Shown here one piece after another: positions 11,945 through 63,261 of a stretch of 64,000 nt of DNA (position 1 is the first letter of the stretch; every line of letters begins with the position of its first letter). The position numbers and the translations under genes are program-made. The DNA is taken from positions 39,869,032 through 39,933,031 of the forward strand of contig NC_068985.1 in the NCBI RefSeq assembly GCF_001194135.2. Direction: 5' to 3'. The notes under the pieces were generated by a model, which was given only the letters and a program-made list of their open reading frames with translations, ran no database searches and was not told the DNA's origin. The DNA comes from Octopus bimaculoides (taxonomy: Eukaryota).

Positions 11945-13850
11945 TCTCTCGTGTTCTATCCTTGACCAGCCTAACTCTGCCACCCGCCTCTGTCTCACTC
12001 TCGGTTTCGATAACCACTTGCTTCACCAACACTTCCCCTTCCTCCATCACCCCACCCTATAAAAAGTAGCGCACGCACTCGGATTCTGCTACTTCATTTT
12101 AATAACTCCACCGAAAGAATACGAATCCAGAAGATGCTCTTCTCTAATGTTGCTATATCGTGGTACACCCGCCCCACTACCACCTGTACCGAAAAGTCGC
12201 TATCCTCTGTCATCCTTTGGTTGTCTCCCATGAACACTTCTAAAGGCTTAACGTCATCCCCGCTCTTACTTAGAGTTTATCTCCTATGTAAGGTAGTGAT
12301 CATATGGCGCATAAAAATTATGGTGCAGTGTATGCAGCTTGAAGGCTATTGTTTGTTTATGAATTCTGCCAGATGCGAGCTTTCTTTTCAGGTACATGAC
12401 GCTGCTATCCCTCATCCCAGGGTCTCACGAGCCCACACTTCCCACACCCTCAGGGTTGGCACACTCAACGTGGGCACACTGAAAGGTAGGTCTGGTGAGA
12501 TTGTTGAGATGCTTGAACGGAGACGTATAGATTTGTGCTGCATCGACGAAAGTGGAGAGGAGGTTCCGCTAGGTTCCTCACAGGCAAAGAACACAGGTAC
12601 AAGATTTTCTGGGCAGGGAACACTAACAGGGTCGGGGGTGTGGGTATACTTCTTGCGGAGAAATGGGTTGATAAAGTAATTGAGGTAATCAGGGTATGCG
12701 ATAGAATACTTAAGATTAGATTCGTACTACATCATGAGTTAATAACCATTATCTCGGCCTATCCCCCTCAGCCGAGGCTACCTGATGGACAGAAAGACCG
12801 ATTTTATGACACCCTCTTGCAGACTACCTCGTTGACGAATGACAGGGACCTTTGCTTTGTGGCTGGTGATTTCAATGGACATGTTGGACAACATACAGGG
12901 GGCTTTCATTGTGTACATGGAGGCTATGGTTTTGGTTCCCGCAATGAGGAGGGAATCAGGCTGCTGGAGTTCTGCGATGCAAATGATCTTATGGTTTGCA
13001 ATACTAACTTCAGGAAACCTGCAAGTCACCTACAGATCTGCTAGACACACTAATCAAATTGACTACATCCTCGCCAGAAAAAGGGAAAGACGGCTGCTTA
13101 TAAATGCAAAACATTCCCAGGCAAAGAATGTAACCCACATGTGCCGGTGGCACGTGAAAAACAACATTCGAGCATGGTCGTTGCCAGTGCTGCCGGACTG
13201 GCTCCCGTGCAGGTAGCACGTAAAAAACACCTTTTAGGAGAGTGGGTTATATATCTTTAGATATACACCTAACTTTCCTACATTAAATTGGAAGAAAACT
13301 GAACGCAGAAACTCCAAACTGATTAACAACAACAAATATTTATTGTACGGTGGAAAATAAAACAGCTTCTAATTGTCCGGTTTTAGAGTAGCCTGAAATG
13401 TAGATGTACGGTTATTCGAGCTGGTGTCGTTATAGAGACAACTTGGTTCAACCACACTCAAATGGGAGAGCTTGCTTAGACGTCTTGCTTGGTCGCTGTC
13501 AGGCTTGGTAAGAGACAGTCTAATAGCGGGAACGCTTCGATGTTGAAACCCACGCATGCGTGGTTAAGGATTCAGTAATGGTGCCTATGCTTTTTGGCGC
13601 CAATATGACGTCACTACAACCTTTTGAGTATGGTCGTTGCCAGAATCACCTGACTGGCCCTCGTGCCGGTGGCACATAAAAGCACCCACTACACTCTCGG
13701 AGTGGTTGGCGTTAGGAAGGGCATCCAGCTGTAGAAACTTTGCCAGATCAGATTGGAGCCTGGTGCAGCCTTCTGGCTCGCCAGTCCTCAGTCAAACTGT
13801 CCAACCCATGCCGCCATGGAAAGCAGACGTTAAACGACGACGATGATGAT
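11945..13850 (+). mobile_element. Internally deleted RTE LINE (5'UTR + APE endonuclease joined to 3' tail), interrupted by a solo LTR
   Basis: LRVGTLNVGTLKG, GGVGIL, ISAYPPQ, GDFNGHVG, NxIDYIL endonuclease motifs; at about 13135 the sequence jumps straight into the 3' tail, which ends in (GAT)n. Confidence 0.88.
13234..13618 (-). mobile_element. Solo LTR (Gypsy-like)
   Basis: The minus-strand start TGTAGTGACGTCA is identical to the Gypsy LTR start at 55875; ACCTT duplication at 13229-13233 and 13619-13623 splits an RTE tail. Confidence 0.7.
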
Positions 13851-14729: not shown

Positions 14730-15421
14730 GATCTATTTTAAAACGGGGGCGCCAGTATTTTCTTAACGAAACACTAACGAAACACTTTGAAACTTGGGAC
14801 ACTGGTAGAATGTGTCATATAAAACATCTTTTACTCTTAGTCTTCTTAACAAAAAAACGTACATCGCAAGTTATTCCATGTTAAAGTTGTCGTATTTCTG
14901 TAATTTCAACCAATCACTGACGTCTATTCAGCTGAATAGAGTTACTGCTGGGCGGTCATAAAAATGTTATTCCCTGTGACATATTTCATCCGGTTTAATC
15001 GTAATTTATACGCATATATTGTTTATATAATAAATTACGCTGTGCGTNNNNNNNNNNNNNNNNNNNNNNNNNNNNNNNNNNNNNNNNNNNNNNNNNNNNN
15101 NNNNNNNNNNNNNNNNNNNNNNNNNNNNNNNNNNNNNNNNNNNNNNNNNNNNNNNNNNNNNNNNNNNNNNNNNNNNNNNNNNNNNNNNNNNNNNNNNNNN
15201 NNNNNNNNNNNNNNNNNNNNNNNNNNNNNNNNNNNNNNNNNNNNNNNNNNNNNNNGGCGCCCCCGTTTTAAAATAGATCCCAAAATAGATAAGTATACGA
15301 AGTTTGAAAGTCTTTCCGTACCAAAAACAGTACATAAAACATAAATGAAAACTGGCGCCCCCGTTTTAAAATAGATCCAAAAATTTTAATCTGTCGGTCA
15401 GATCTCTAACCCTAACCCTAA
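14730..15421. mobile_element. Inverted-repeat element spanning a gap, with (CCCTAA)n
   Basis: The 27 bp at 14730-14756 are the exact reverse complement of 15351-15377 (partial extra copy at 15256-15279); CTAACC repeats at 15406-15421; internal segments recur at 11552-11612 and 13860-13940. Confidence 0.6.
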
Positions 15422-38600: not shown

Positions 38601-39214
38601 TTCAAGGTGAATATGGTACTTAAGTTTAGGCACCAGAATTAAGTATGGTATTATCCATACAATTTCAAAATAAGGTGATTAAAATCAAAATAAGCAACAN
38701 NNNNNNNNNNNNNNNNNNNNNNNNNNNNNNNNNNNNNNNNNNNNNNNNNNNNNNNNNNNNNNNNNNNNNNNNNNNNNNNNNNNNNNNNNNNNNNNNNNNN
38801 NNNNNNNNNNNNNNNNNNNNNNNNNNNNNNNNNNNNNNNNNNNNNNNNNNNNNNNNNNNNNNNNNNNNNNNNNNNNNNNNNNNNNNNNNNNNNNNNNNNN
38901 NNNNNNNNNNNNNNNNNNNNNNNNNNNNNNNNNNNNNNNNNNNNNNNNNNNNNNNNNNNNNNNNNNNNNNNNNNNNNNNNNNNNNNNNNNNNNTTGACTT
39001 AGCCAGACCATACATTCTTCCTTTCTACTTGGAGAGTTTAAATGTAGTTATAAAAATATGTCCTTCTGTTGAAATGTAATTTCTGTAAATTTCTATATCT
39101 TTGTGCAGCTGAGGATTGCTCTGCATTTTAAATTTGATGTAATGTTCACATTGCTTAAATAAATGGAGTAGCATGAAACAATCGTACTTTGGATATCCTT
39201 GTTGCTTATTTTGA

Positions 39215-40790: not shown

Positions 40791-42389
40791 TCTTTCAACT
40801 CCTAATATTTGTTTCTGTTTGTTAAAGCAAAAAGTTATTTTAAATGACTTTTATATCCATATGTTTTTATAGTCTTTCACTTGCTTCAGTCATTGCACTG
40901 CAGCCTTGCATGAGCCTCATACTTATTCTGTTTGTCTCTTTTGCTGAAATGCTAAATTACAGGGATGTAAATAAAACAACACTGGTTGTTAGATAACATG
41001 GACAGAAAGACACAGGTTTCTTCATTGTTTCTCTCCATCAAATTCCTTCACCTGGCATTGGTTGGCCCGGGACTATAGTAGATAATACTTGTCCAAGGAA
41101 TTGTGCAGAGGGACTAAACCTGCATCCACAAGGTTCCAATGTGAGCAGCTCACTATAAACAAATTGCTTAAGGGTCCAAACGTGCCACAAGCATATTGGA
41201 ACTGGCAATAACATTCTTTTTATACATGTCACTGCTTAGCGCTCCCACTCCATAATTTGTTTACAGTGAGCTGCCGATTGATGCTATCAGTCATTGTATG
41301 ATGACTAGGATAGAATGAGAGGGATAATCTCTCTTGTCAATTCACTGTTTGGTTTCTATGACTGAAGAGGAGATAACCACTCTAAAAATGCTAGCATCTC
41401 ACAGTCTGGGTAGGTGGCACTGCAAGCTGATTTAAGTGTATTTACACCATTTGACTACAGTGAGAAATTTTCTCCACGACAGAACAGTGAATAGCAAGTT
41501 TACAGGTTTGAACATGCCACAAGCATATTTGAACTGGTAATAACATTGCATTTATACACATCACTGTTTATCGCTCGCATTCCATAATTTCTTTTATTAC
41601 AGTATATGATCTGTCTACTCTCCCACAAGTATATAAAAAGAAATGTGAAGAGAACCTCTGCACTGTTGTTTGACTTTTGGATAAACAAAAATAACATCAT
41701 GAAGCAACTAGAAAGCTTTTGTAGCTACTCCAGCTACTAGAAATAACTACCATATTTCCTTCAAATTATCTTATTGTCTGAAAATAGTGGAACACAAAGA
41801 GAAATTGCACAATGTTTTCCTTGATACACTGTACTTGAACATCTTTGATCACAGAATTTGCAGACCAAGGCAAATCTGAAACTAAAGCATATTTTCATAT
41901 ATCTGACTGGCATCCATGCCAATGGCATGCAAAAAGCACTATTTCAGCGTGGCCAATGCAAGTGCCGCCTGACTGTCACCCATATTGGTGGCACATAAAA
42001 ATCACCATTCGAACGTAACCGAGTTCAACTTTGCCTTTCATCCTTTCAAAGTCAATAAAATAAGTACCAGTTGAGCACTGGGGTTGATGTAATCGACTTA
42101 CCTCCTTCCCCATAATTCCTAGCCATGTGCCAAAATTTGAAACCAATATTGACAATGACAAGCCCTTTAATGCCTTAGAGTTCATCTTGCAATCAGTTTT
42201 CACCACTTTGTTCCATATCATCTTAATTTTCCATCTTCCACATGTTCCATCCACCTTGATACTTCATCTATGTCATCTTATATATAAAACCACATTGCTG
42301 TCTCAAAACAGTCTTTTGCACATTACATTTGATTCCTGTGAGTTCATTTCTACTCCATCATTCATGCACATTTAACATTACATATCATT

Positions 42390-43616
42390 TCACTACCCGG
42401 TGCAAGCTATGGACACATAAGAGGTGCAGCAACATCAAAGGCAGGTTAACTAGCAAGTTAGTTTTTGTTTGTGGCAGATGTTCAGGTGCAATAAAGACTG
42501 CAAACAAACAGGAAACAACTTCTATCTCATTCCAGGGTGAAAAACTAGAGGTAGTCGATAGCTTCCGCTATCTGGGCGACCAAGTTAGTAGTGGGGGTGG
42601 GTGCGCTGAAAGTGTAGCTGCTAGAATAAGAATAGCCTGGGCAAAGTTTAGAGAGCTCTTACCCCTGCTGGCGACAAAGGGACTCTCACTCAGAGTAAAA
42701 GGCAGACTGTATGACGCATGCGTACGAACNNNNNNNNNNNNNNNNNNNNNNNNNNNNNNNNNNNNNNNNNNNNNNNNNNNNNNNNNNNNNNNNNNNNNNN
42801 NNNNNNNNNNNNNNNNNNNNNNNNNNNNNNNNNNNNNNNNNNNNNNNNNNNNNNNNNNNNNNNNNNNNNNNNNNNNNNNNNNNNNNNNNNNNNNNNNNNN
42901 NNNNNNNNNNNNNNNNNNNNNNNNNNNNNNNNNNNNNNNNNNNNNNNNNNNNNNNNNNNNNNNNNNNNNNNNNNNNNNNNNNNNNNNNNNNNNNNNNNNN
43001 NNNNNNNNNNNNNNNNNNNNNNNNNNNNNNNNNNNNNNNNNNNNNNNNNNNNNNNNNNNNNNNNNNNNNNNNNNNNNNNNNNNNNNNNNNNNNNNNNNNN
43101 NNNNNNNNNNNNNNNNNNNNNNNNNNNNNNNNNNNNNNNNNNNNNNNNNNNNNNNNNNNNNNNNNNNNNNNNNNNNNNNNNNNNNNNNNNNNNNNNNNNN
43201 NNNNNNNNNNNNNNNNNNNNNNNNNNNNNNNNNNNNNNNNNNNNNNNNNNNNNNNNNNNNNNNNNNNNNNNNNNNNNNNNNNNNNNNNNNNNNNNNNNNN
43301 NNNNNNNNNNNNNNNNNNNNNNNNNNNNNNNNNNNNNNNNNNNNNNNNNNNNNNNNNNNNNNNNNNNNNNNNNNNNNNNNNNNNNNATAAAAGACACCAT
43401 TTCGAGCGTGGCCGTTTTCGTGCGGGTGACACGTAAAAGCACCCACTACACTCTCTGAGTGGTTGGCGTTAGGAAGGGCATCCAGCTGTAGAAACTCTGC
43501 CAAATCAGACTGGAGCCTGGTGTTGCCATCCGGTTTCACCAGTCCTCAGTCAAATCGTCCAACCCATGCTAGCATGGAAAGCGGACGTTAAACGATGATG
43601 ATGATGATGATGATGA
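42390..43616 (+). mobile_element. RTE LINE 3' portion, young copy spanning a gap
   Basis: Open frame CKLWTHKRCS...FVCGRC...LEVVDSFRYLGDQ...AWAKFRELLPLL...LYDACVR, then the gap, then an intact tail with (GAT)n. Confidence 0.9.
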
Positions 43617-44530: not shown

Positions 44531-45810
44531 TTACAATTTTAGGTTGATAGTTGACATATAAAACCCATCCTCTTGGCGGATTTTGTCTGTGGAACACAAA
44601 TATAAGTTGTCAACAACCTGCTCACCAAAATCACAGTTCATATATTGTTCATAGATGGAAGGATCAATCTGATTTGATTCAGTCAGCTTGCTAACTTGAC
44701 GAGTGAGTTTCATTATAGTCATATGGGGTACAAAATTCTTGTTTATGTCCGTCAACAATTTCTCTTCATAAAAGTAACATTTGAGTTTCTGAACAAGGTC
44801 TGTGAGTTCTTCTGGGATTTTGATGCAACCATAGACAACACGGTGGGAAAAATGGTAAATGTTTCTAATTCTAATTGGATTGCAGTCAGCAACTGTTTTA
44901 GAAAATTCCTCTTGTAGATTTTTTAACAAATTTGTAGCATCAGCAATTTGATGGGTGTGGTCAAGACGCAACATGCATAGTGTTAGATGCAGACAGACAG
45001 GTGGGATGAAACAGTCAAAGTAGGTTGGTTTACTCTTTAAGATATCTTCTTGCATCCATGCAACGGTTTTCAAGATTTCTTCATTAGTTATTCTCAATGC
45101 CACAAAAAAATTGGGCTGTGTAATTTTTGCACAGAATTCATCATCACAGAAAAAGTTGGGGTCACTTGGCATTTCATATCGAGAATCTGATTCAAAGACC
45201 AAATTTTCTTCCATATCATGTTTCAGTTGTTCTTCATAATTAGATACTATATCTGTTATTGTCATTTTACTTCCTGTTGAGCCAAAAACCAAATCAAGAC
45301 GCTGAACTTTATCCCAAACTTTTATTGTCTTGTATTTAAAATAGAATATTCTGTGTTTTGGAATGGCCAATGTATAATAATCAACTGATGAAATATCTTC
45401 CCAAGAAAAACTGTCAAAAGATTTCTCAATAATTCCCACAAAACGATCCATATAAGCAACAATAAAATCTTCAGATTTTAAGTTCTCATCCCATAGAATT
45501 CTAGAAATTACATCAGAAGCTGTTTTCATTGCTGGCTTCTTATCAATAATTTTATCTTCTTCATTTTTTAAACTTCGTTTTTTCTTTGAATGTTTTGCAG
45601 TTGGTTTACCTTTTTCTTTGACAGGCTCTGTTATATCATTTTGATTCTCTGTCACCCACTGAAGACAGGCACCAATCAAGTTCTGTATCATAGGGTTACC
45701 AACAAATTCCTCAGACTTTTCCATTAAATATTTTGATAGTTGTGAATTTTGAACATTTGTAAGAATGTTTGATGTTGGAATTATTGCAGGTACGACATCA
45801 GGATATTGCT
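44531..45810 (-). CDS. LENG9: LENG9-like RWD-MJ1316-2H protein, coding exon 2 (RWD C-half, MJ1316/DUF504, AKAP7-like 2H phosphoesterase)
   Basis: gttttatttgcAG acceptor gives KQYPDVVP...EEFVGNPMIQNL (RWD). MKTASDVISRILWD...Y.DRF.G...IPKHRIFYFKY...WDK..RLD..FGS is MJ1316. QPNFFVALRITN...HLTL...PHMT is a 2H domain. The ORF is intact; the symbol is by homology (LENG9-like). Confidence 0.88.
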
Positions 45811-46299
45811 CTGCAAATAAAACAGAAAACTCTTTAAAAAAGATAACAGAGTGATATTGAATAGAAGTATCGGACATGTCTTGTGGGATTACTGAAATAG
45901 CAACTAATCACTTTCTATTTATTCTCTTTCATTGAAGGGTATGTAGTATTGAGGCAGGTGGCTTATCCCAAGTGTTGAGTGGCAAGAGTATGACAGAGCG
46001 AGAGGAACAAGTGTCCTGCTGTAGAGGATATATATATATATGAGCATAGGAATATTGTAAATGAAAATGATTGAAGGTTGTCCAGGTAATAAACAAGCAA
46101 ACAAAATAGAGTGAAAAAACCCCAGAAAAGTAAAATTCAAATAGAGGACTAAGACAATGTAATAAGTTGTGTAGGAAAAGTAAATGGCCCTTCATCAAGG
46201 TTGAAGGAAGAAGAAAGAGAAAAAATATGGAGGATAAAAAAAAAGGCAAAAGGCAAGGTTCAAATAATATGAAAAGAGTAACAAACAATACAAATATCA

Positions 46300-46900
46300 T
46301 CACCATCATCATTTAGTGCTTGTATTCCATGCTAGCAAAGGTGTGGTTTGACAGGATTGCACAAGTCAGAGGACTGCATCAAGCTCCAGTGTCAGTTTTA
46401 AGTATGGTTTCTGCAGTTGGATGACTATTCTAATGCCAGTCACATTACAAAGTGTACTGGGTGCTTCTTCAGGTCACCAGTAATAATGAGGTTGGCAAGT
46501 AGCTCAAGACAAGACTCTTTCATCGAGGGGTATGTAGTACTGAGGCAGGTGGCTTATCCCAGGTGTTGAGTGGCAAGAGTATGATAGAAGGATAGGAACA
46601 GATGTCTTGCTGTAGAGGAGATATATGACTGTCCCAGCTGGAGAAGGAGAGAAGATGATGGCGATGGGATGTCAGGACATACCCTCAAGGTACATGAAGG
46701 TGAATGTAATGAGGATGGAGACAGAGGAACTGGTGAGGAGATATAGACAGAGAATCAGGTAAGTTCACGAGAGTGTGAGGTGAGCTATAGATGCTTATAG
46801 GTAGGTATATAGCTGATGGAATGAACAGAAACAGGGAAAGGAGCATGGTCAGTGGTGAATATTAGTTCTAGGGGAAGGAAATAGGAGGGGGACACCAAAA
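46300..46900 (-). mobile_element. RTE-tail-type repeat in the LENG9-like intron
   Basis: (CAT)n plus reverse-complement tail; 46525-46620 is duplicated at 45937-46030. Confidence 0.6.
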
Positions 46901-47045
46901 ACAAATGTTACAGCAAGAAAGAGTCGTTTATTTACTGTTAAAGATAAATATATATTTACAAAAATACATTAATGAAACTATAAGACATTTGACAAAAATA
47001 CACTCATTACAGACTTTTTTTGCATAAATTTTCTGTTATCCTTAC

Positions 47046-47217
47046 TTGTTAATTGAAATTTCAGTGACAAATTCTTTATTTGGAGCTGGATAGTAATAAT
47101 GTATGCAAAGTCTCCAACAGATTCTATTATTTTGCACTTTGATTCATGATGTTTCTTTAACTGAGAAATTTCTTCAGCCACACAGCCAAGAACTGCACCG
47201 GTTTGATCATCTGCCAT
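47046..47217 (-). CDS. LENG9-like RWD-MJ1316-2H protein, coding exon 1 (N-half of RWD)
   Basis: catccATGg start at 47217, 8 nt after a ttttcaaAG acceptor; MADDQTGAVLGCVAEEISQLKKHH...LSLKFQLT; A|GTAAGG donor at 47045, phase 1. Confidence 0.85.
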
Positions 47218-48163
47218 GGATGTCACTTTGAAAAGACAAGAGGAGCAAAAAAAAAAAATATCATAATAAAGAAGAAGTAAAAAGTAGATATTCTTTATCA
47301 GCTTTGATAAAGAATTTGGTCACAAACATATACACACACATGCATACATTCACACAAACACACATATGTACACAAACAGGGCAGTGAAAATATATAAAAA
47401 TTTTCAAGAATTTAGAATGTGATTTTACACTTTTGTTGAAATCTAAATGTCAATGTTGGAACTTTGCTTCACTGTTAAAAGCTAATTCCCCCTTTGGAGG
47501 AAGAACTGATAGTTCAAGGAACATATGCAGCAAAGAGTCTGCTTCATTGATGAGGTAATAATGGCTTCAAATTTTGGTACAAGACCAGTTGATTCGTGGG
47601 AGGGGATAAGTTGATTTCAGTGACCATAGTGTTGAACTGGTACTTATTTTATCAACCTCAAACAGATGAAAGGCAAAGTTGAACTCAGAATGTAAAGATG
47701 GATGAAATACTGCTAAGTGATTTACCTGGTGTGCTAATGATTCTGCCAGCTCATCCACTTTACTGATGAGGTAATAACAAAACCAAAACCTATCTAGAAA
47801 GGTTTTCATCCTTGCTAAAATAATATATTATCATCATTGTCTTAACGTCCACTTTTCTATACTTGCATGGGTTGGATGGAGTTTACTGAGGAAGATTTTC
47901 TGTGGCTGGATGCCCTTCATATCATTTAACTCATACCAAGACAAGACATGGCAACTCAAACACACACACATCTACCTATCTATCTAACTATCTATCTATC
48001 TATCATGAGAGGCTTTTAGTTTGTCTACCAAACCCACTCACATGGTTCCGATTGGCCCAGGTCTATAACAGAAGACACTTGCCCAAGAAGCCATACACTG
48101 GAACTGAGCCTAAAACCATGTGGTTGAGAACCAAGCTAATTCACCACACAGCCACTCCTGCAC

Positions 48164-49080
48164 ACAGGTGGGTGGGGCAAAATGAGGTGTTTTTACTGTA
48201 TTTTTGACTTCGAGACAAAATGTAATTTTTACAAATGTTCACTACCTTACAAAAATTATATTAGCTAAGCAAATGGCCTTCCCTAAATGCATTTAAACAT
48301 CATCTGATCATTATTTCAGCAAATTATTGCTGTTCTCTGTGGGCATACAAAAAACAAATTTGGTTGGGAAAAAATAAGTAGGACAAGACAGTGTAAATTT
48401 GCCGCTTCAGAAAACAGACTCATAGACATCAATATCCATCCTTAGACATCAGAAAGATCAGTGATCAAAAAAATAATTTAGATATCTAGGTGAAATAAAA
48501 GATCAAGGAAAAATTAACGAAACTCGATTAAATAAATAAATAAATATATATATATATATANNNNNNNNNNNNNNNNNNNNNNNNNNNNNNNNNNNNNNNN
48601 NNNNTATATATTCTCTATAGCTTCTTCACCACCTGCTCTTCGTGATATATTTACACACTATACAGTTAAACAGAAGAAATTATTGTAATTAGTTATTACT
48701 CATTTTACCCCATTCTAGACATCAATTTTTTGAAACTTGAAAATTATCAAATTAGACATTAGTGTGGGAAAAATTTGACTTGGAATCCAACAGAGAAAAG
48801 AATATTGACTGTTAAACACCAAAAAATTATCCAGATAACTTATTAGCAACCTCAATTACAATCAGGTTCAAAGTTGAGGAAAAGTTTCTTGAAAATAGAG
48901 AACCTGTCACCTGACTATATTTCAGACTCCCTCGACAACAACTACGCTGACCAGTTTTTACTCCTAAATATTATGTAGCAATACAAAACGATGATGCAAT
49001 ACTTGAAATGTAATGATTTCAAACAGGCAGGGAGTAAATAACAAGGAATCAGGTTACAAATTTTGCCCCACTCTCCTATG
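48164..49080. mobile_element. Non-autonomous TIR DNA transposon (pogo/Tc1-like, tentative)
   Basis: Left ACAGGTGGGTGGGGCAAAATG versus right reverse complement CATAGGAGAGTGGGGCAAAATT; partial second copy at 5820-6180. Confidence 0.6.
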
Positions 49081-50571: not shown

Positions 50572-51944
50572 CACACACACACAAACTTCCATAAAGAATA
50601 TTGTTTAACTCTTTTTTTTTTTTTTACCTGAGATCTCCGTTGGGGAGCAGCACTTTCTGTTATAGTTCAGGAACGAGACACTAATAATGTGGTTACAAGA
50701 GGAGTTGGTAAGCAACCGAGTTTTTTATTTATTTATATATACACATTGTTATTCAATCGTTACACACGATGTCGCAATAATACGATTTCGTGTATTGATC
50801 GAAATCATAAATAAATGAAAGTTATATTCAAGGCAGGTAACTCCCAATGACTTTTTTTTTCTCGCTTGAAAGTCTTATCGAAATTCGATATCATTCTCCA
50901 ACCAGAAAACAGCATCGCTGTTTATTGTCTTTTATTTTCCATAAACCTGTAACCATGTACGATTGTTAAGCATCCACACTATTAAAATATTATCGTGAAG
51001 CAAGGAAAGATCCTCTATGCAGTCATTCAAAATGCTTAAAATAGCAGAATTTCCCTCAGCTCTGGCCCGATCTTTAAAAAAAGAAAGCAAGGTGTAAATA
51101 GATACAGGCCTTATCTAACATTTCTGCATTTTAAAATAATTTAAGAATAGGAAATACTCAAGATGGAGGAAAGTCCCAATCCGGGAAGAATTTAACCAAA
51201 TATTTCTGGTTGTGATAGAATTTTCAGTGAAGACTGAGACTTTATTTACAACTCAAGAGTTGTAGATAAAGTCTACCACAGGTGTTCAACAAGAAATTGC
51301 AGGACTGTTTATCACATTCGAAAGCGTAATGTTTCCAAAAACATGCACCTAGATCTCTGGGAAATGCTTAAACTGTTCTCTTTGGAGCAACTTAGGTGCG
51401 GGATCATCTCAGGGTTTGTCCCAGGGAAAAAATCAAGCACGAACCGCAAATTGGAGTCGGCTGGCGATAAATGACTTAACCATTACCATTTGTTGAGGAA
51501 TATTTAGCTGATGTTTTTAACAGATAGAGTGACTACAGAGGCTATATGGGTTATGGAGGTGGGCGTAAAGCAAAAGTTATTCATTGAATCAATATAATTT
51601 ACGACATCCCAACAAATTCGCGGGTATGTTCTTATGCTAGAAATCATTTAGAGAGAGAGAGAGGAGTGTGTGTGAAGGAGAGAGAGTCACTCTTTGTGCT
51701 ACTGGTAATACGTAATCCAGTACAATATGTCACATGATCAGACCGACGGTGATTAAGCTGGCAACCCTACCAAAATTACTTGTTAAAAAAAATTAGTTTT
51801 CATTGGACAACCTGCGAGATAAAAAAACAAAGCTTGTGAAAGGGCTGGTGAACTTAGTAGAGTCAATGGCCATCCCATCCAACAGTTGGGAGTGAGTGAC
51901 CCAAGAGATCTCTCTGGGAGAAGGAAATTCCAAAATAACACACA

Positions 51945-52337: not shown

Positions 52338-52785
52338 NNNNNNNNNNNNNNNNNNNNNNNNNNNNNNNNNNNNNNNNNNNNNNNNNNNNNNNNNNNNNNN
52401 NNNNNNNNNNNNNNNNNNNNNNNNNNNNNNNNNNNNNNNNNNNNNNNNNNNNNNNNNNNNNNNNNNNNNNNNNNNNNNNNNNNNNNNNNNNNNNNNNNNN
52501 NNNNNNNNNNNNNNNNNNNNNNNNNNNNNNNNNNNNNNNNNNNNNNNNNNNNNNNNNNNNNNNNNNNNNNNNNNNNNNNNNNNNNNNNNNNNNNNNNNNN
52601 NNNNNNNNNNNNNNNNNNNNNNNNNNNNNNNNNNNNNNNNNNNNNNNNNNNNNNNNNNNNNNNNNNNNNNNNNNNNNNNNNNNNNNNNNNNNNNNNNNNN
52701 NNNNNNNNNNNNNNNNNNNNNNNNNNNNNNNNNNNNNNNNNNNNNNNNNNNNNNNNNNNNNNNNNNNNNNNNNNNNNNNNNNNNN

Positions 52786-53500: not shown

Positions 53501-55454
53501 TCTTTTTCTTCAGAAATGATGTGAATTTAGTACTGGTTTCTTGTAAAACTGCAACTGCCTTCTGGTCTCTTGTAAAAATGCAACTGCCTTCATCTCGTCG
53601 CTGATCACATTGTAAAATCTTTAGCCAATATCTTTCAGGTTTTTAGAAATTGAAAAGTAAACTAAAAAGAAACCTAAAGTAGTTTCCCTTGTAAAACACA
53701 CGCCAAAGTAGCACTGACTATTTTCAATCCTTTCCTCTCCAGATTTAAAATAGTCTGGAATACCCTTCTCATTCACGTTTTTATTATAAACATCGATATA
53801 TAGATGCTCAAATTAAATAAAGTCGAACGGATGCGGTTTAAGAAAGATTTGATAAAGATATCAAGCTTGTTAAGTGACAACATAAAAGCTCCAATGTTGG
53901 TTATTTAGTATATAACTTTCATGTGTCCACTAATCGGTATTCCATTGTCAGTTCGTAAACGATGTTTGTATACGTGTAGAATATATTCAAAACAACAGAA
54001 GACCTTTGAGTAACAACAATTCATGCTTTGGAACTGACTTAGTGATTTGGTTTCCATTTCCGGCTGTCACCACCTCAAACAAATACTACGGTCATTTTGC
54101 ACCGTTGTCACGTGTGTTATTCTAATTTATTAAAGATTTTAATTAATGAAAGACTAGTTGGCTGTGAGTTTGCTCTTGCTAGCATTTAACTTAACCTTTG
54201 ATTTGTCCTTTACAGAATGAATTCTACCAGTTTAAAAACACATGCGTTATTGATTTTTTTCTCTTTATTGATATCCATTTATCTGCTTGCACGTATTTGA
54301 CTGCATAACGCATTATTCAATTGGTTTTGTAAAACACGAAAATAACAATGAATATTCTTACAAACAAAATTATGTAAACTTACCTTGAATTATGCTGAAA
54401 CTTAAGATCATATGCTATGTTTGAATTCTATCCTCTTCTTACTTGTAGCCTAAAACCATGTGCTGTGTAATTATTGCTGCATTATTCTACCAACTAAATC
54501 AGAAAGTGTTTATTTTTTTTATATGCAGAAAATAAAGGGGAAAAGTACATACTACATATTATTGTTGTTATCTCTACGAACAATTTCTTAATTTCCCACA
54601 GATACTTCTTGTAACTCTTGGTGAGGAAGGAATTCTATATACACATTATCGAGCGAAGGAACTGGTATAAAGAAAACATAATTAATGCTAGAAAAGTTGC
54701 TGATATTCGATGGGATATGTAATGGTAAAAGTTGCAAGTCTTCTCATAAATTTTTGACCTTGACTCTATTCAACAAGTCGAAAAAAACGTGTTTTTGTTC
54801 AAATTGATGGTTGAAATCAGTTTAGCACTAGATTAGCATTAATTGAGTAGTCCTGTGGTTAAAGACATTTCATCCACGACCATCTCGTCTTTTTCAAATA
54901 TAGTACATATAAGACTACATCATTATCTGACTCATCTTGAGACAGTAGTGTATGAATTGAGGGAAATTTAGCAACTACACAGAAGCTCACATCTGAAATA
55001 ACATTAAAAATTAAAATGTTTATTTTTCAATGCATTTCATAAGGTAATGTGTGGAACAGTTGTTCCTTACCTACAAACAAAAATCAGATTTCTTTCAAAG
55101 AAGCATGTATTAAAATTAATTATCGCTTTTTGGGGGTGGGGAGCTACTAGTAATTATCACAAGGTTTTATTTTCTTTCTCCAACTAAGAAAGAAATTTCA
55201 ATTTTTTTTTTCTACATAAACATTCAGTAGAGCACTCAACAACTCATACCATTTGCTTATTTGAATTATTCCCCATCCGAATTTATTTCTTTAAAAATCC
55301 TTGGCAACTGATCAAGTAAGTTAGAGTTGACACTTTTATACTGACGAGATACAGTAGAACGAAACCTGCTCATAATTGTCCCTTATCTGTTCAGATAAGC
55401 ATTTCTCCTCTTCTAAGCAAGTGTAAGATGTAAAATTGGTTGGCACTGGAAGGG

Positions 55455-57345
55455 TGCCACACAATTCCTTACATAAATGCTAGAGGAAAAATATCGGAAC
55501 AAGAAAACATCCGAACATAAAAACAATCCTTTTATTTTGTATGTACAAAAATTTACACCTTGGGACAATCAGTAGACAGGTCTGATGTGGAAGCAGCAAA
55601 GTCGGAGTTAATCATACTTTGTGAAGGCATTATTCACAGAAATTCAGCTACACAGAGCTGGTCAAATACCGATCAGCAGCAGAGGCGAATAGGAAGCTGC
55701 TGAGGACACGTCTGCATAGTTCAGCGGCTGCATCTCGAGTCCGAGATACAAGAGAACTCTGCTGCTGCTGCTGCTAGTTTTCTGCGCATGCGCATCAGGG
55801 ACCTTTCGGCAGGCCTTTCAGAAGGTTCCAATCCTGTGCATGCGTGCTGGAGACCCTCAAAATGACGTCACTACAAGGCTCCCCCTCGAGTGCGGAAGCA
55901 TGAAACAAGATTGTAGTGGCTCCAAAAAACAAGATGGCTACCGATCACCCAGAAGATGTGGCACACGATATGACAACTCAAATATCAATACAAAAAGAAA
56001 TAAACATACACAACAGTTTTTTTGTTTTTTTTACACAAAATGTTCAAGAGTAAAAAAAATGAAATGGGCCAAGAGAAAAAAAATGAATGTCAAANNNNNN
56101 NNNNNNNNNNNNNNNNNNNNNNNNNGTTGACAAAGGTGCATGTGTAGGTGATGGTGTTGCCAAAGGTGCATATGTAGGCTCAAAGGCGTGACAGTGGTGT
56201 CATCAAAAGATGTATACACCTCAAAATATGCCTTTTTAAGCCGATCTACAGAGACGGTCTCCGAACGACCATTCATCTCGATGGTAAAAACTTTGGGTGT
56301 GCGAGAAAGCACACGAAAGGTCCTTTATAAGGAGAAACAAGAGGTCCCTTGACAGAGTCACCTCGAACAAAAACATGCGACCAAGAGTTCATATCCGGTG
56401 GGACATGAGAGGGTGAAGATTGTTCCCGGGAAACCATGGGCAGAAGATTTGAAAAATACGTGCGAAGTCTGGCGACATAAGACACCGGATCATGGAGCTG
56501 TGAAGTGTCTGGCACCAACATCGTACTAGGCAATGCTAGTGTGGTACCATACAGTACCGCAGAAGAAAAACCCAGGTCTGCCTTGACAGCAGTACGACAA
56601 TCAAGAAGAACAATTGGCAGAAACTCAGTCCAAGACTGTGGATCTGAAAAGGCACGTAGAGCAGCCTTAAGCTGTCTATGGAACCGTTCAACTAATCCGT
56701 TTGAAGCTGGATGATAACTGGTCGTGCGAATGTGGTGCACACCTAGAATACGTGACAATTCACGAAATAAAGAGGCTTCAAACTGACGTCCACGATCAGT
56801 ACTTAATCTGGGCAGAACTCCGAAACGGGAAATCCAGTTAGAAACAAAAGCTCGAGCAACAGATTCAGCAGAAATATCTGCTATTGGAATGGCTTCTGAC
56901 CAACGGAAGAAGCGATCGACACGTGTTAAAAGATAAGAGAACCCGCGACTCACAGGCCATGGTCCAACCAGATCAATGTAGACATGGCGAAAACGGGCCT
57001 CCGTTGGAGGCAAGTGTCCAAGTGGGGCACGAATGTGCCGATGAATCTTGGACGGTTGGCACTTGGAGCAAGTGCGTGTCCAAGAGGTAATAGTGCGACG
57101 CATATTCGGTCAGAAAAACCGAGCAGTGATAAGCTTAAGGGTAGCAGCGATGTCAGGGTGTGATAAGTAGTGCAGTGTCTCAAACTCTGAGCGTTGATGA
57201 TTCTCAGGCACGAGTGGCCTGGGAGAACCAGTGGAAGTATCACAAAGAATAGTACCTTCAGCTGACGGAAGCAGAAGATAGGCAAACTGGCAACAGGAAA
57301 ACTTAGGCGAAGTTAAGTCTAACGATGCCAAAGGTGGTTGCTCAG
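55455..57345 (-). mobile_element. 5'-truncated Gypsy LTR retrotransposon (integrase, PPT, 3' LTR)
   Basis: LHYLSHP..CSKCQ zinc-finger region, HVYIDLVGP, DRFFRW, TDRGRQFE, YHPASNGLVERFHR core, GPxVxPYKGPF; PPT GAGGGGGAGCC precedes TGTAGTGACG at 55875; the LTR ends about 55455 (CA) and has AATAAA. Confidence 0.88.
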
Positions 57346-57954: not shown

Positions 57955-58731
57955 TGCAGGCTATCTTTCGGCAGAAATCTATGATGTATTGAGTGAGAGA
58001 ATCTCATTATTTCATTTGCTAAACAGAGCTGAACAGTCAAACACACACTCGCACGTTGTCATGTACGACTGACGTCACTTACTTATTCCGAATCGTGTAG
58101 AAACACACTGCAAGCTGCCACAGTCAATAAAATATGAATACAGTTTACAAATTTGTTCCTTCTGTGCGGTCCGGTAGTTGGGGACTCTTGTTTTATATAG
58201 TTATCATATCTCACTATGTAGCCATTAAGTCAATGGTAAACGAAGAGATAGACAAAATCAAACGAAATAAATGCGGACAGTGATGACTTGTTTCCTTCTT
58301 TCTTTCAAATTATAATAATTGCAAGTCTGAATTTAACAAAGATAATTTACTGACGAGAAACAAGTTCTACCAGAAGAAGGGAAAAAAAACTCCTACATTT
58401 AGATTATGTTCCATGAATTACAAAATTTTTCTAACTATATTTGTTAGTCCGATTAGTAAATTGAGTATGAAACAAAAACAGTTACATGAACTCAATATTG
58501 TAGTGAAGGAAGTACCATTTCAAATATTTGCGTCGTGGTCATACATCACCTTAGCTTATAATTTATATTTCAGTGTTCTATGTTTAACGTGGTGGATATG
58601 GATATTTAAGGGAAGCAAAGTTCTTATACATTTCGTTTATTAAACTATCAAAGAAAAAATTGGTAATATGCGAGCACTAATACATAATATTTACTCTATA
58701 TATATCTTAATTTGTCCCCTTCATCATGTCT

Positions 58732-58802
58732 GCATCGGTGGTTCAGTGGTAGAATGCTCGCCTGCCACGCGGGCGGCCCGGGTTCGATTCCCGGCCGATG
58801 CA
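58732..58802 (+). tRNA. trnG-GCC: tRNA-Gly (anticodon GCC)
   Basis: 71 nt, GCATCGG...CCGATGC-A acceptor stem; A box (TGGTTCAGTGG) and B box (GGTTCGATTCC); anticodon loop CTGCCAC; T-run Pol III terminator just downstream. Confidence 0.97.
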
Positions 58803-59327
58803 ATTATTTTTTTATTTCACTTTACATTCAAATAATGACGTTAATATTGTGAATGAGTTCATTGTAACCATTTAGAACGCCTACGTATTTTAGTACACAT
58901 TTATGCTACTTATATAAACAATAATTCGCCGTTGTACACCTCAGTTCTGCTGCTGGATATACTAGTCTTTTGTCGAAATTATCTATCGATCGTCTGTCAT
59001 TTATGCATAATGAACTCACCACCTGCAGTTAACAAAAAGGCTAGTTAATTTCAACGCCAATAAATATTGTTTTTAATTTGACCCTGCCAGTTTATATCGA
59101 TTTTCCAACCTAACTCATATCAACACAGACCACCATTTCTAGTGACCTTCTATATTTGTAATATGTGTATGTATGTGGTAAGGTCACGCTACTAATTGTA
59201 ATTCCAACAAAAACAGCAGGATAAATCTATTCACGAAAAACGTGGGAGGAATGGTGTTAAGAATCTGACTAAGAATCCAATTAACAAGGGACTCAACTCA
59301 TAGAAAACGACTTCCTCCTCTCGAAAT

Positions 59328-59555: not shown

Positions 59556-61419
59556 GTGAGTCACATAACTTCTGTCCTTTTTCCCGGTTATTACGCACCT
59601 TATCAGATAATTAACTACGTATTCTTCACGTCTATGAATCGCATGAACAGACAGAAACCAAGTTAAACTTTTTTCTCATCTACATGAAATAATCTACAGA
59701 GTTGTCATAATACCTTTTCGTCATTCTGCTGTTAAATTCTAAGGAAGTCGACATTGTATTTCCTTTTTCTTTTCTTTTTCGGGTTCAGTCGCCTACACAG
59801 TAATTGGTTTTGTTCCTTTCTTTTCAACAAAGATCTGACATATTACTTAAATTATCGTGTTCCTAACTTTGATCGGTTGATTTTTTAAAGTTATCTTTTA
59901 TTCCGTCTGTATTCACCGCCGGCAGCAGGTTGAGTTAAAATTTAACTTCACTAGTCCCACTCGAAATTGTAGTCCTAGATACAATATGACGGGGGGGGGG
60001 GAAGAACGATGGGAAGGTCTCGGCTGGAATGTCTCTGATTGTGGATCCGCAGGTTTAGGGATGATCCGGAGCTAATCAATAACATGCCAAAGGACACCTC
60101 TTAGTGATCTCTACATCTACTAGATATAACAGCCAAATCTTCCACATAGCATGTCCTATTTTCAATAAAGAAATGTACATTGGATGATGTAGTCCTCGAT
60201 ACACTATCTGAATAAAAGAAAAGATGGAACATCATTGATCATAGGTTATTATTCTTTCCCACACAATTTTTCACTGATCATCCCCTTCCTGTGCCATCAG
60301 TTATCTCTCCCGCTCCTCTGAGCTACATCTTAGACTTGTCATACCTTGTCTTTAACACCTCTCATATCTGCCATCATTCTTTCCAACCACTCATATATCT
60401 GCCATTGATGTTCCCTCACTGTTGTCACACCACTCACATTATGTATCTCTGACCTCCCTGTCACTATACATCATCTTGCACACCATCGCCCTATTTTTTT
60501 AAATCTATCTTCCTTCCTGAGCCACTTCTTTCTCTCTCACCTTACAATATTTCTTATTGACCATACCTCCACCTTTGTTCATCACTCTCTATATTCACCA
60601 CTTCCCTACCCTCTCCTTAACCATCTGTTATTCTTGTCTAACACACTTATGAAATGTTTACGTGTGTGTGTATTAATAAGATATAGTGGTACAAGAAGGC
60701 ACCAATCTTTGCTGGAAATAGCAGTCGATAATAATACAACGCTATGTAAAGCTTCACTGAAATATATACTGGTAAAGAAGTATGCAGGCAGCGAACTTAA
60801 AAAGTTTTCGTCTTACCTCAAGGAAGAACATCGTAAAAATGGACAATCCAGAATGGATAATCTAGGACCTGAGTTTCGGACTTTCCAAAATATGGTTGTT
60901 ATTGTAAATTTGATTAGTCCTCATCAGCTAGATTCACCTGTGATGAAATTTTAAAATATATATTTCAGTGAAGCTTTACATAATATCATATCGTTATTGA
61001 CTGTTATTTCCAGCAAACATTGGTACCTCTTTGCACCACTATTTCTCATTCTACCTTTACGGTGCTTTATTTGGCCAGAAAGTGATACTATTGTATTGCA
61101 ATTGTTAAAAATTTATGTGGATATATATATAATATCGTCATCATCATTGTTGTTGTTATCAATTTATGTCCACTTTCCATGCTGGCATGGGCTGGATGAA
61201 CTGGAGTAAGTTACCTTTACAGTTTGGTTTCTATACCTGATGCTCTTCTTTAAACGACCTATTGTACAGAGTGTATTGGATGCATTTTGTCATGGCACAA
61301 GTTCTGGAGACTAAAGGGATTATGTGCATATGTGTATATATGTATATGCATGTATATATATCAAACAGATGTGTTTTAATACTATTCCACAGCCATACCA
61401 ACAATCCAATAATACTAAT

Positions 61420-61536
61420 CCACACACATGTATGTGTGTGTGTGTGTATGCATGTATATATGTATGTATATATATATGTATGTGTATATATATGTATGTA
61501 TTTATGTGTATCTGTATGTATATATGTATGTGTGTT

Positions 61537-61579
<43 letters not shown>

Positions 61580-61734
61580 GTATGTGTATATATATGTATA
61601 TATATGTATGTGTATATATATGTATATATATGTATGTGTATGTATATGTATGTATATATGTATGTGTATGTGTATGTATATGTATGTATATATGTATGTG
61701 TATGTATATGTATGTATATATGTATGTGTATATG

Positions 61735-61765
<31 letters not shown>

Positions 61766-62010
61766 GCATATTTGTATGTGTATATGTATGTATATATATG
61801 TATGTATACATATATCTATGTGTGTGTATATATGTATNNNNNNNNNNNNNNNNNNNNNNNNNNNNNNNNNNNNNNNNNNNNNNNNNNNNNNNNNNNNNNN
61901 NNNNNNNNNNNNNNNNNNNNNNNNNNNNNNNNNNNNNNNNNNNNNNNNNNNNNNNNNNNTATATATATATTTATATGTATATATATATATGCAAAACACC
62001 CACACACATA
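61420..62010. repeat. Compound (TA)n/(TATG)n/(TG)n microsatellite in the CCDC51 intron
   Basis: Low-complexity sequence with an embedded gap. Confidence 0.95.
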
Positions 62011-62355
62011 TATAAACCGCTGTTAATTGATCACACCAAGCTTGAGGAAATTGTTATATCGATGAGGTCCAATATGACCAAAACATGTCTATAGCAGATC
62101 AAATTTTTCCCAAAGCATGTAAATTAGGTTTTGGAATTACCTTCCCTTTTTTTTGAAGGTATTAATAATTACTGTTAGGTTTTGGGTTTTTTTTTCCAAT
62201 TAAGAAGAGAATTTTTATCACCCTGTAACTATAATTCATGCTATTGGTCCACTTAAGTCGTTTCATTATTTCATTAATTTTTTAAAATTATGCTTGCAAT
62301 ATGTTGTCATTCAGCATAAACCTATCATAAATATACATATTCATCTCTTTTACAG

Positions 62356-63261
62356 TCTGAGAAAAATTTTTTGAAAATTCAAGAACAGCGCCGCCAAAAA
62401 AGTCATGAGCTTTTTGAAATTCAAATGAGTCTTCGGAAGATCAATGCTGAGCTGGAGAAGATAAACCGAGCCGATGATAAATACTTGGCATTGCTAACTC
62501 AAGAGCATGCAATCATACAGAGAGAGGCAAACTTAAACAATGATTTAAGCGATCTTGAAAAGCTAGAGAAGGAACATTTCACAGCTCTATCAATATCAGT
62601 ACGAGAAAGTCATGAAAAAGAACGTGCTCAATCTGAGAAAACCAAATATTGGTCTGTTATTGGTTCCATTATTGGTGCCTTGCTAGGTATAATTGGTACA
62701 ACCATAAACAACAAAATGAGAATGAATGAGTTACGTTCAATTGTGACCAAATCTACTGAAGAGGGGCAACAGCAAAGGGATTTAACAGAGAAGGTAATTG
62801 CTGCTTTAAAGAAACAATTGGCTTCAACAGAGGCTTTCATCTCTGAATTACATGGAGTATTGAAATCAAATGTGTTAACTCCAGCAACTCTCTCTAATAT
62901 GGGAGAACAATTTATTCATTACAATAAGGAACACTCTAAAGATTCAACTGCTGCTTTCTTAACTGGTAGCTCCCAAAAACTGGAGCAGCAAACTGCAGAG
63001 TTATTGACCTGCCTTAAACACCAGGACAAATACCTAACAATTGAACTGGCAGCCATTAAAGAACTCTTACAAAAAACTCATGTGGATGTAAACAAAGATG
63101 GCATTATCTATATTAACCCTGATATTGATCACCATCTTGAAGATAATAATCGGAAACTGGAACAACGCTTGAAATTGCACTCTTTAGCAACAGTGACTTT
63201 CATTTATGCAGCATTTGCTTTAACTCTGCCTGTACTGTATTCAATCTTTCGAGGGAACTGA
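62356..63261 (+). CDS. CCDC51: CCDC51 (MITOK) exon 2
   Basis: ttttacAG acceptor; coiled coil; SVRESHEKERAQSEKTKYWSVIGSIIGALLGIIGTT.NN..R..ELR matches the CCDC51 signature; C-terminal TM. Total 377 aa. Confidence 0.93.
   Translation, partial: SEKNFLKIQEQRRQKSHELFEIQMSLRKINAELEKINRADDKYLALLTQEHAIIQREANLNNDLSDLEKLEKEHFTALSISVRESHEKERAQSEKTKYWSVIGSIIGALLGIIGTTINNKMRMNELRSIVTKSTEEGQQQRDLTEKVIAALKKQLASTEAFISELHGVLKSNVLTPATLSNMGEQFIHYNKEHSKDSTAAFLTGSSQKLEQQTAELLTCLKHQDKYLTIELAAIKELLQKTHVDVNKDGIIYINPDIDHHLEDNNRKLEQRLKLHSLATVTFIYAAFALTLPVLYSIFRGN

Follow-up and report, generated by a model that had tools for sequence, protein, structure and literature searches.

The question raised by this locus is what is encoded by a spliced gene on the reverse strand of a 64,000-nucleotide stretch of the Octopus bimaculoides genome (RefSeq assembly GCF_001194135.2, contig NC_068985.1, positions 39,869,032 to 39,933,031; hereafter the window, in whose numbering all positions are given), and whether the combination of an RWD domain, an MJ1316 domain and a 2H phosphoesterase domain in its product is an invention of invertebrates. 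The combination had been proposed, from the letters of the DNA without database searches (the sequence-only reading), to be an RNA end-processing or repair enzyme in which RWD replaces the CCCH finger of vertebrate LENG9. As judged from its similarities, the locus is the O. bimaculoides orthologue of LENG9. Its product is read here, with a probability of about 0.6, as a modular phosphoesterase acting on RNA or oligonucleotide termini, and the form with an RWD seems to be the ancestral one and not an innovation of invertebrates.

The spliced coding sequence (47217..47046 joined to 45810..44531) comprises 1452 nt, is in frame and encodes 483 amino acids. The junction between 47046 and 45810 put forward in the sequence-only reading is flanked by a consensus donor AA/GTAAGG after 47046 and by an acceptor TTTGCAG/ with a polypyrimidine tract before 45810. 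The product was found to match residue for residue the O. bimaculoides RefSeq protein XP_014785061.1 ("uncharacterized protein LOC106879860"), and the gene model, junction included, is thus already public; the same product is held in UniProt as A0A0L8G291 ("RWD domain-containing protein"). An open frame of 448 codons, the length found in exon 2, would be expected by chance about 2e-9 times in the window (36% G+C), and a tblastn search of the window detected no second LENG9-like or RWD-2H copy. Within the intron a 112-nt direct repeat occurs twice (45924-46035 and 46515-46626, 89% identical), with no third copy elsewhere in the window.

The site of this intron, which falls within the RWD domain, appears to be shared by relatives. 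A word-indexed protein database searched with an RWD profile gave four exon-1 open reading frames (ORFs) only, and an exhaustive HMMER search of 1.84 billion representatives was used instead, in which 619 proteins were matched at <=1e-3. More than half of the best matches (79 of 150) were short ORFs, most of them ending near profile positions 50-55; these appear to represent exon 1 only, which points to a conserved intron position. In one relative a genomic ORF (P0228, ...KFQLTGESFF) can be set beside an mRNA-sized contig (P0005 on L001, ...KFQLTASYP).

Comparison with Pfam recovered all three predicted domains, each scoring higher than the curated cut-off: RWD (PF05773) at residues 14-104 (38.1 bits, cut-off 22.8), inside the first 115 residues where it had been placed, MJ1316 (PF04457) at residues 152-225 (86.9 bits, cut-off 26.3) and AKAP7_NLS (PF10469) at residues 290-481 (126.6 bits, cut-off 24.4). 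The motifs quoted in the sequence-only reading are likewise present (YPDVVP at 60-65, KHSKKKRSLK at 130-139, HLTL at 332-335 and HMTI at 420-423), so that the three-domain architecture with its Lys-rich linker is real. An AlphaFold2 model of the full protein, built with 60 relatives, has a mean predicted local distance difference test score (pLDDT) of 84.6 and contains three confident globular parts, one for each domain, with residues 119-149 (pLDDT < 50) and 262-284 disordered. The model shows three modules, predicted to fold independently, joined by disordered linkers. From its pattern, KHSKKKRSLK may be a nuclear localization signal (NLS). The octopus protein yielded neither a C-x(7-9)-C-x(4-6)-C-x3-H pattern nor a match to zf-CCCH in Pfam; the idea of a CCCH remnant in the linker was dropped after the empty pattern search. 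The polypeptide ends with the 2H domain, and the Pfam scan showed no kinase module.

The proteins nearest to the octopus product are O. vulgaris "leukocyte receptor cluster member 9-like" (94% identity) and a protein of Argonauta (71%), followed by matches in gastropods, bivalves, a chiton, the annelid Owenia, the nemerteans Lineus and Tubulanus, the brachiopod Lingula and two tardigrades, many of them named LENG9 or LENG9-like. Amphibian and amphioxus LENG9 match at approximately 1e-59 to 1e-62 over MJ1316 and 2H, and AKAP7 matches in the 2H domain only, at 8e-18. The suggested relation to LENG9 is borne out by match lists dominated by "leukocyte receptor cluster member 9(-like)" and by the shared order of MJ1316 and 2H. 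Vertebrate LENG9 resembles the octopus protein in its MJ1316 domain, which is preceded by a Lys-rich segment and followed by an AKAP7-like 2H domain that holds both HxT motifs. It differs in carrying a CCCH finger approximately 37-60 residues from its N-terminus and no RWD, whereas the octopus protein has an RWD and no CCCH.

A precomputed Pfam RWD was present in 36 of the 120 best matches (molluscs, an annelid, nemerteans and tardigrades), and a local search added a degenerate RWD in several more relatives such as Lingula. The earlier description as an uncharacterised invertebrate architecture is therefore correct in its first part, as no characterisation was found in the searched literature, but the form is not rare and is in fact common among LENG9 orthologues. 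It is already in public annotation (as "RWD domain-containing protein" in UniProt and "LENG9-like" in RefSeq), yet it is undescribed in the searched literature, where there was no paper pairing MJ1316 with RWD, no meaningful match for LENG9 with phosphoesterase or RWD, no reported LENG9 function, and for DUF504, UPF0248 and PF04457 only unrelated drug-code matches.

The suggestion that RWD stands in place of the CCCH finger was overturned by a search with the jellyfish Rhopilema protein P0105 combined with Pfam scans with coordinates. Both domains coexist in one polypeptide, in the order RWD-CCCH-MJ1316-2H, in Rhopilema, the hemichordates Glandiceps and Ptychodera, the crinoid Antedon and the amphioxus species Branchiostoma belcheri and B. 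lanceolatum (annotated "LENG9"). The finger of the cnidarian and deuterostome orthologues occupies the exact place of the octopus Lys-rich linker. The urchin Diadema, Saccoglossus and the coral Montipora have an RWD with no confident CCCH, and the CCCH pattern was not seen in the other lophotrochozoan and tardigrade members examined. Spider and flatworm entries list no CCCH family, and in amphibian and lungfish proteins the finger lies 37-60 residues from the N-terminus, leaving no room for an RWD. Given the coexistence of RWD and CCCH in relatives, the octopus form is best read as the result of CCCH loss from an older four-domain protein. The most parsimonious account would be an ancestral eumetazoan RWD-CCCH-MJ1316-2H protein, with loss of CCCH in lophotrochozoans and tardigrades, of RWD in vertebrates and of both in spiders and flatworms. 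The octopus RWD is thus probably the common, ancestral animal form and not a novelty of the octopus.

In addition to the full-length genes, molluscs have a second paralogue consisting of RWD, a basic linker and 2H with no MJ1316 (P0217, P0245, P0256, P0292, P0317 and P0319, from Mya, Aplysia, Haliotis, Physella, Gigantopelta and Biomphalaria), in which RWD and 2H stay together even though MJ1316 is absent. In Gigantopelta the LOC number of this paralogue is two away from that of the full-length gene. A protein of the chiton Liolophura (P0003) has two AKAP7-like 2H domains.

The three domains are conserved to very different degrees, with identity between octopus and jellyfish of 71% for MJ1316, 30% for 2H and 19% for RWD. 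In a comparison of 19 diverse sequences, 30 columns of MJ1316 do not vary, and polar residues (D, R, H, K, E, S) fill many of these; by virtue of this far stronger conservation MJ1316 looks like the functional core of the protein. According to one source the domain recognises 2',3'-cyclic ends of RNA and occurs in many eukaryotes in fusion with RNA-repair domains (PMC6514570).

Within the 2H domain, modelled at pLDDT > 90 over most of residues 285-483, the HLTL and HMTI motifs lie 88 residues apart, which fits the definition of 2H proteins by two H-phi-S/T-phi motifs about 80 residues apart (PMC8406329). Both motifs are intact, as had been claimed, and no change of H332, T334, H420 or T422 occurs in the 60 aligned relatives, which range from cnidarians to chordates; this invariance argues for an active enzyme. 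AKAP7 was the best match in the PDB by sequence (5jj2, E 7.7e-18, over the 2H domain only), and the central domain of AKAP18 was the best structural match by Foldseek (TMt 0.84-0.87). These were followed by AKAP7_NLS proteins of trypanosomatid mitoribosomes, ASCC1 (TMt 0.75), LigT-type enzymes and cyclic phosphodiesterases (CPDases), and the viral 2',5'-oligoadenylate (2-5A) phosphodiesterases rotavirus VP3 and mouse hepatitis virus ns2 were also among the structural matches. AKAP7/AKAP18 thus leads the Pfam, PDB and structural comparisons, and like the octopus protein it has a pair of H-phi-T-phi motifs preceded by a basic, NLS-like stretch; it differs in its identity of only about 24%, in lacking MJ1316 and RWD and in possessing a PKA-RII binding helix. 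The substrate shown for AKAP7 is 2-5A (PMC4161237, PMC8406329), whereas the octopus protein is linked to the 2',5'-phosphoesterase subfamily (AKAP7, NS2, NS4b and VP3) by similarity only. ASCC1 also couples a 2H fold to an RNA-binding module, but this module is KH instead of MJ1316 and RWD, and no sequence similarity to ASCC1 was found by HMMER against the PDB.

Under the preferred reading these parts would act together. MJ1316 would hold an RNA 3' end, which by literature prediction is a 2',3'-cyclic-phosphate end, and a 2',3'-cyclic phosphate or 2',5'-phosphodiester would be processed by the 2H domain without the help of a metal. Nuclear import and/or non-specific contact with RNA may be served by the Lys-rich linker, and the RWD would dock the enzyme on a protein partner. 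A role in RNA end healing is supported by relatives to which a C-terminal P-loop kinase (AAA_33, at or near the Pfam cut-off) has been added, namely proteins of the sponge Geodia, of corals and of some other relatives (Geodia P0138, coral P0157, P0139 and P0199). These fusions recall the kinase and cyclic-phosphodiesterase module of tRNA ligases; in Trl1, healing is the work of a kinase combined with a 2H CPDase (PMC7145591, PMC5434554). The sponge and coral relatives share with the Trl1 and CNPase modules a 2H phosphoesterase joined to a P-loop kinase, and 2',3'-cyclic-phosphate ends are the expected target in either case. They differ in that the LENG9 relatives have 2H followed by the kinase, the reverse of the Trl1 order, and in that the LENG9 2H domain belongs to the AKAP7 clade and not to the Trl1 CPD clade, with a single weak tRNA_lig_CPD match, in Geodia, under the cut-off. 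The octopus protein itself has neither kinase nor ligase.

Several points weigh against this reading. The predicted template modelling score (pTM) of the full octopus protein is 0.47, and the relative arrangement of the domains is thus not confidently predicted. The function of MJ1316 is a prediction, and the MJ1316 profile gave only chance-level matches against the PDB, with no solved homologue detectable by sequence, for which reason no structural analogy is drawn for this domain. AKAP7, the one close 2H relative to have been characterised, cleaves 2',5'-oligoadenylates and leaves 2',3'-cyclic ends (PMC4161237, PMC8406329), and as it makes rather than removes such ends the direction of the chemistry is the main uncertainty. 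The octopus protein also lacks both the kinase and the CCCH finger of its relatives, and the searched literature contained no biochemical data for any LENG9-family protein.

It is also possible, though rather unlikely, that the protein is an AKAP7-like 2',5'-oligonucleotide phosphodiesterase which degrades messengers of the 2-5A type and so limits an OAS-like antiviral response, with MJ1316 binding the cyclic-phosphate product or the oligonucleotide. The AKAP7/AKAP18 affinity of the 2H domain, the activity of AKAP7 on 2-5A and the structural matches to viral 2-5A phosphodiesterases would all be in keeping with this. However, the identity to AKAP7 is low, the family is defined by an MJ1316 domain that AKAP7 lacks and that is under far stronger constraint than 2H, and the fusions to a kinase or a CCCH finger seen in relatives suggest polynucleotide ends as the target and not a small messenger. 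Another explanation would deny the 2H domain any catalysis and make the protein a scaffold or adaptor, in which capacity AKAP7 is best known. In its favour, no substrate has been assigned to many of the 2H proteins, and AKAP7_NLS-type proteins are structural subunits of trypanosomatid mitoribosomes. Against it, the two His and two Thr of the HxT motifs are the same in all 60 relatives, which is hard to explain in the absence of catalysis, and this explanation is considered very improbable. Even less credible is the suggestion that the RWD exon belongs to another gene or to a faulty gene model, the true product being the 448-aa ORF of exon 2, which has its own ATG, or a shorter MJ1316-2H protein. 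Many database entries do lack the RWD; these, however, begin in translated intron just before the YP motif and are therefore exon-2-only ORF calls. Exon 2 alone would encode half an RWD, full RWD-MJ1316-2H ORFs were found on mRNA-sized contigs (P0005, on a contig of 2131 nt), and dozens of species, as well as RefSeq models, show the same architecture. On these grounds a gene-fusion artefact was rejected.

To whom the RWD might bind is a separate matter, and here the class of the domain is informative. The RWD modelled alone gave a pLDDT of 85.9 (about 86-90 overall) and the canonical order of one helix, four strands and two helices (H2-16, E21-27, E30-38, E43-49, E59-64, H69-85, H92-110). Y60 and P61 are conserved in >=90% of the family alignment, and Foldseek matched the domain to RNF25 (2dmf, TMq 0.81) and RWDD3 (4y1l_C, TMq 0.75). 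A profile of 32 LENG9-type RWDs searched against the PDB matched RNF25 at 3.7e-11, RWDD1 at 3.8e-10, RWDD3 at 1.2e-8 and GCN2 at 3e-6. The exhaustive search also returned 42 long matches that are not LENG9-like, among which 24 carry DFRP_C (RWDD1 type) and three a RING (RNF25 type). By these comparisons the octopus RWD is closest to the GCN1-binding class (RNF25, RWDD1, GCN2), and with the RWDs of RNF25, RWDD1 (DFRP2), GCN2 and RWDD3 it shares the canonical fold and the YPxxxP motif, the RWDD1 and RNF25 types being the nearest paralogues. Those of RNF25, RWDD1 and GCN2 are attached to a RING, DFRP or kinase, whereas that of octopus sits on an RNA-end enzyme. Also among the profile matches was a Logan contig protein (P0284) in which an RWD is fused to an Obg-like GTPase (MMR_HSR1 and YGR210-like_G4).

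It has been reported that GCN2, RNF25, RWDD1 and IMPACT each bind GCN1 through their RWD, that in a model R2312 of GCN1 contacts D37 of GCN2 and E30 of RNF25, and that a GCN2 RWD mutant with D37K/E125K/E136K competes less well (bioRxiv 10.64898/2026.04.27.721104). This, together with the nearness of the LENG9-type RWD to those domains in both searches, gives a real basis to an explanation along the lines of the sequence-only reading. Under it the enzyme would be brought by its RWD to GCN1 at collided ribosomes, or to a different factor of ribosome stress or of ubiquitin signalling, and MJ1316 and 2H would heal the ends of cleaved mRNA or tRNA there, so that RNA repair is coupled to translation surveillance. 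Domains were aligned after the GCN2 numbering had been verified on PDB 8t7t. In this alignment GCN2 D37 corresponds to Lys27 of octopus, as in the weakened mutant, E125 to Asn and E136 to Glu, the only acidic contact kept. Deuterostome and cnidarian LENG9 RWDs keep D or E in the D37 column, within an E-x-E-A-L-x-S-I-Y-x-x-D/E-F motif, which speaks for the docking explanation, but most lophotrochozoan LENG9 RWDs have Q or R there, which speaks against it. A Lys at the predicted GCN1 contact weakens the link to ribosome stress for octopus. As the test depends on the alignment and RWDD1 has S, and thus no acidic residue, in the same column, Lys27 is not decisive and only lowers the standing of GCN1 docking, which is regarded as doubtful. 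A canonical GCN1 interface seems plausible for the ancestral protein and would be altered in octopus. A more speculative extension, held to be still more doubtful, is that ancestral animal LENG9 (RWD-CCCH-MJ1316-2H with or without kinase) was a GCN1-docked RNA end-healing enzyme at collided ribosomes, which vertebrates uncoupled by loss of the RWD and lophotrochozoans such as octopus rewired through a changed RWD interface (Lys27) and a dropped CCCH; if true, it would mean a metazoan-wide link between translation surveillance and RNA repair.

To return to the phosphoesterase reading, LENG9 is a conserved animal gene which pairs a predicted reader of cyclic RNA ends with a 2H phosphoesterase and for which no function has been reported. 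The apparently ancestral four-domain form and the kinase of sponge and coral relatives provide a testable hypothesis, that of a partner-recruited RNA end-healing enzyme, and the partner may belong to the GCN1/ribosome-collision network, on which much work is now in progress. As regards the octopus gene, the outcome is modest, since it is a correctly annotated, ordinary orthologue within an unstudied family and not a lineage-specific invention.

The gene had been called two-exon, which is correct for the coding sequence but not for the gene, which probably has one or more upstream 5' exons (Table 1). A T-rich polypyrimidine tract with an acceptor-like AG at 47227-47226 lies immediately 5' of the ATG at 47217, and the first coding exon probably begins at 47225. 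Annotated isoforms of O. sinensis and O. vulgaris have ...VTFMADD in common and part from one another exactly at this point. Using the N-terminus of O. sinensis isoform X1 (MILIFSIVQVTF), tblastn detected a candidate exon at 54384..54411 that encodes MILSFSIIQ, compared with MILIFSIVQ in O. sinensis X1, and that when joined to 47225 would read MILSFSIIQ-V-TS-MADD...; it has no annotation for O. bimaculoides among the sources examined. The segment at 50628..50667 resembles an N-terminal extension of O. vulgaris (MEHNLNLESCSPTEIS), although the match is weak (E 0.006, 13 aa). As both candidates have consensus donors and match sister-species N-termini, the gene probably reaches at least 54411; the octopus LENG9 gene would accordingly have at least one upstream 5' exon and span to about 54.4 kb. 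A gap in the assembly (48561-48604) lies between the coding exons and these candidates. A sigma-70 promoter and terminator scan 5' of the ATG showed no enrichment, this model being inapplicable to a eukaryote.

Table 1. Positions of the octopus LENG9 gene, its encoded domains and its candidate outer parts in the window.
Feature	Position	Strand	Details
First coding exon	47046..47217	-	ATG at 47217; 172 coding nt; residues 1-57 and one base; RWD helix 1 and strands 1-3
Intron	45811..47045	-	1235 nt, phase 1; within the RWD domain, just 5' of the YPxxxP motif, after KFQLT
Second coding exon	44531..45810	-	1280 nt including stop TAA (44533-44531); remainder of RWD, linker, MJ1316 and 2H; tblastn
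RWD domain	45638..47196	-	Residues 8-115, split by the intron; YPDVVP at 45805-45788; Lys27 at 47139-47137
Lys-rich disordered linker	45536..45637	-	Residues 116-149; KHSKKKRSLK at 45595-45566 (residues 130-139), with NLS-like KKKR
MJ1316 domain	45263..45535	-	Residues 150-240, then a long helix (242-262)
AKAP7-like 2H phosphoesterase	44534..45130	-	Residues 285-483; HxT 1 (H332-L-T334) at 44989-44981; HxT 2 (H420-M-T422) at 44725-44717
Candidate alternative first coding exon	54384..54411	-	ATG ATC TTA AGT TTC AGC ATA ATT CAA G, donor GTAAGT; proposed from homology
Candidate non-coding 5' exon end	50628..50667	-	...CSPTEIS then G/GTAAAA; no in-frame ATG; 3' end only defined; putative
Possible polyadenylation signal AATAAA	44182..44187	-	First after the stop, 343 nt downstream; pattern match only

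Further elements were noted elsewhere in the window. A tRNA-Gly(GCC) gene is located at 58731-58803 on the forward strand (ARAGORN and Rfam, 66.7 bits), and a retroelement remnant, namely an ORF of 276 aa that includes an integrase core domain (rve, 39.8 bits), lies upstream of the LENG9-like gene (56273-57103, reverse strand). Three ORF fragments on the forward strand (2025-2456, 12134-13044 and 42329-42729) are probably decayed elements of the long interspersed nuclear element (LINE) type; two of them show weak reverse-transcriptase or endonuclease-reverse-transcriptase similarity under the Pfam cut-offs, and the third adjoins a gap of N letters and has no Pfam match. Eight such gaps are present in total, the other seven besides the one mentioned above being at 10656-11312, 15048-15255, 38700-38993, 42730-43386, 52338-52785, 56095-56125 and 61838-61959. 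A long microsatellite-like TG/TA-rich tract at 61262-62094 gives rise to spurious ORFs of 160-250 aa in several frames. Lastly, a 296-aa ORF at 62371-63261 on the forward strand, with no Pfam match, has two hydrophobic segments as well as a long stretch resembling a coiled coil, and may belong to a neighbouring gene as one of its exons.

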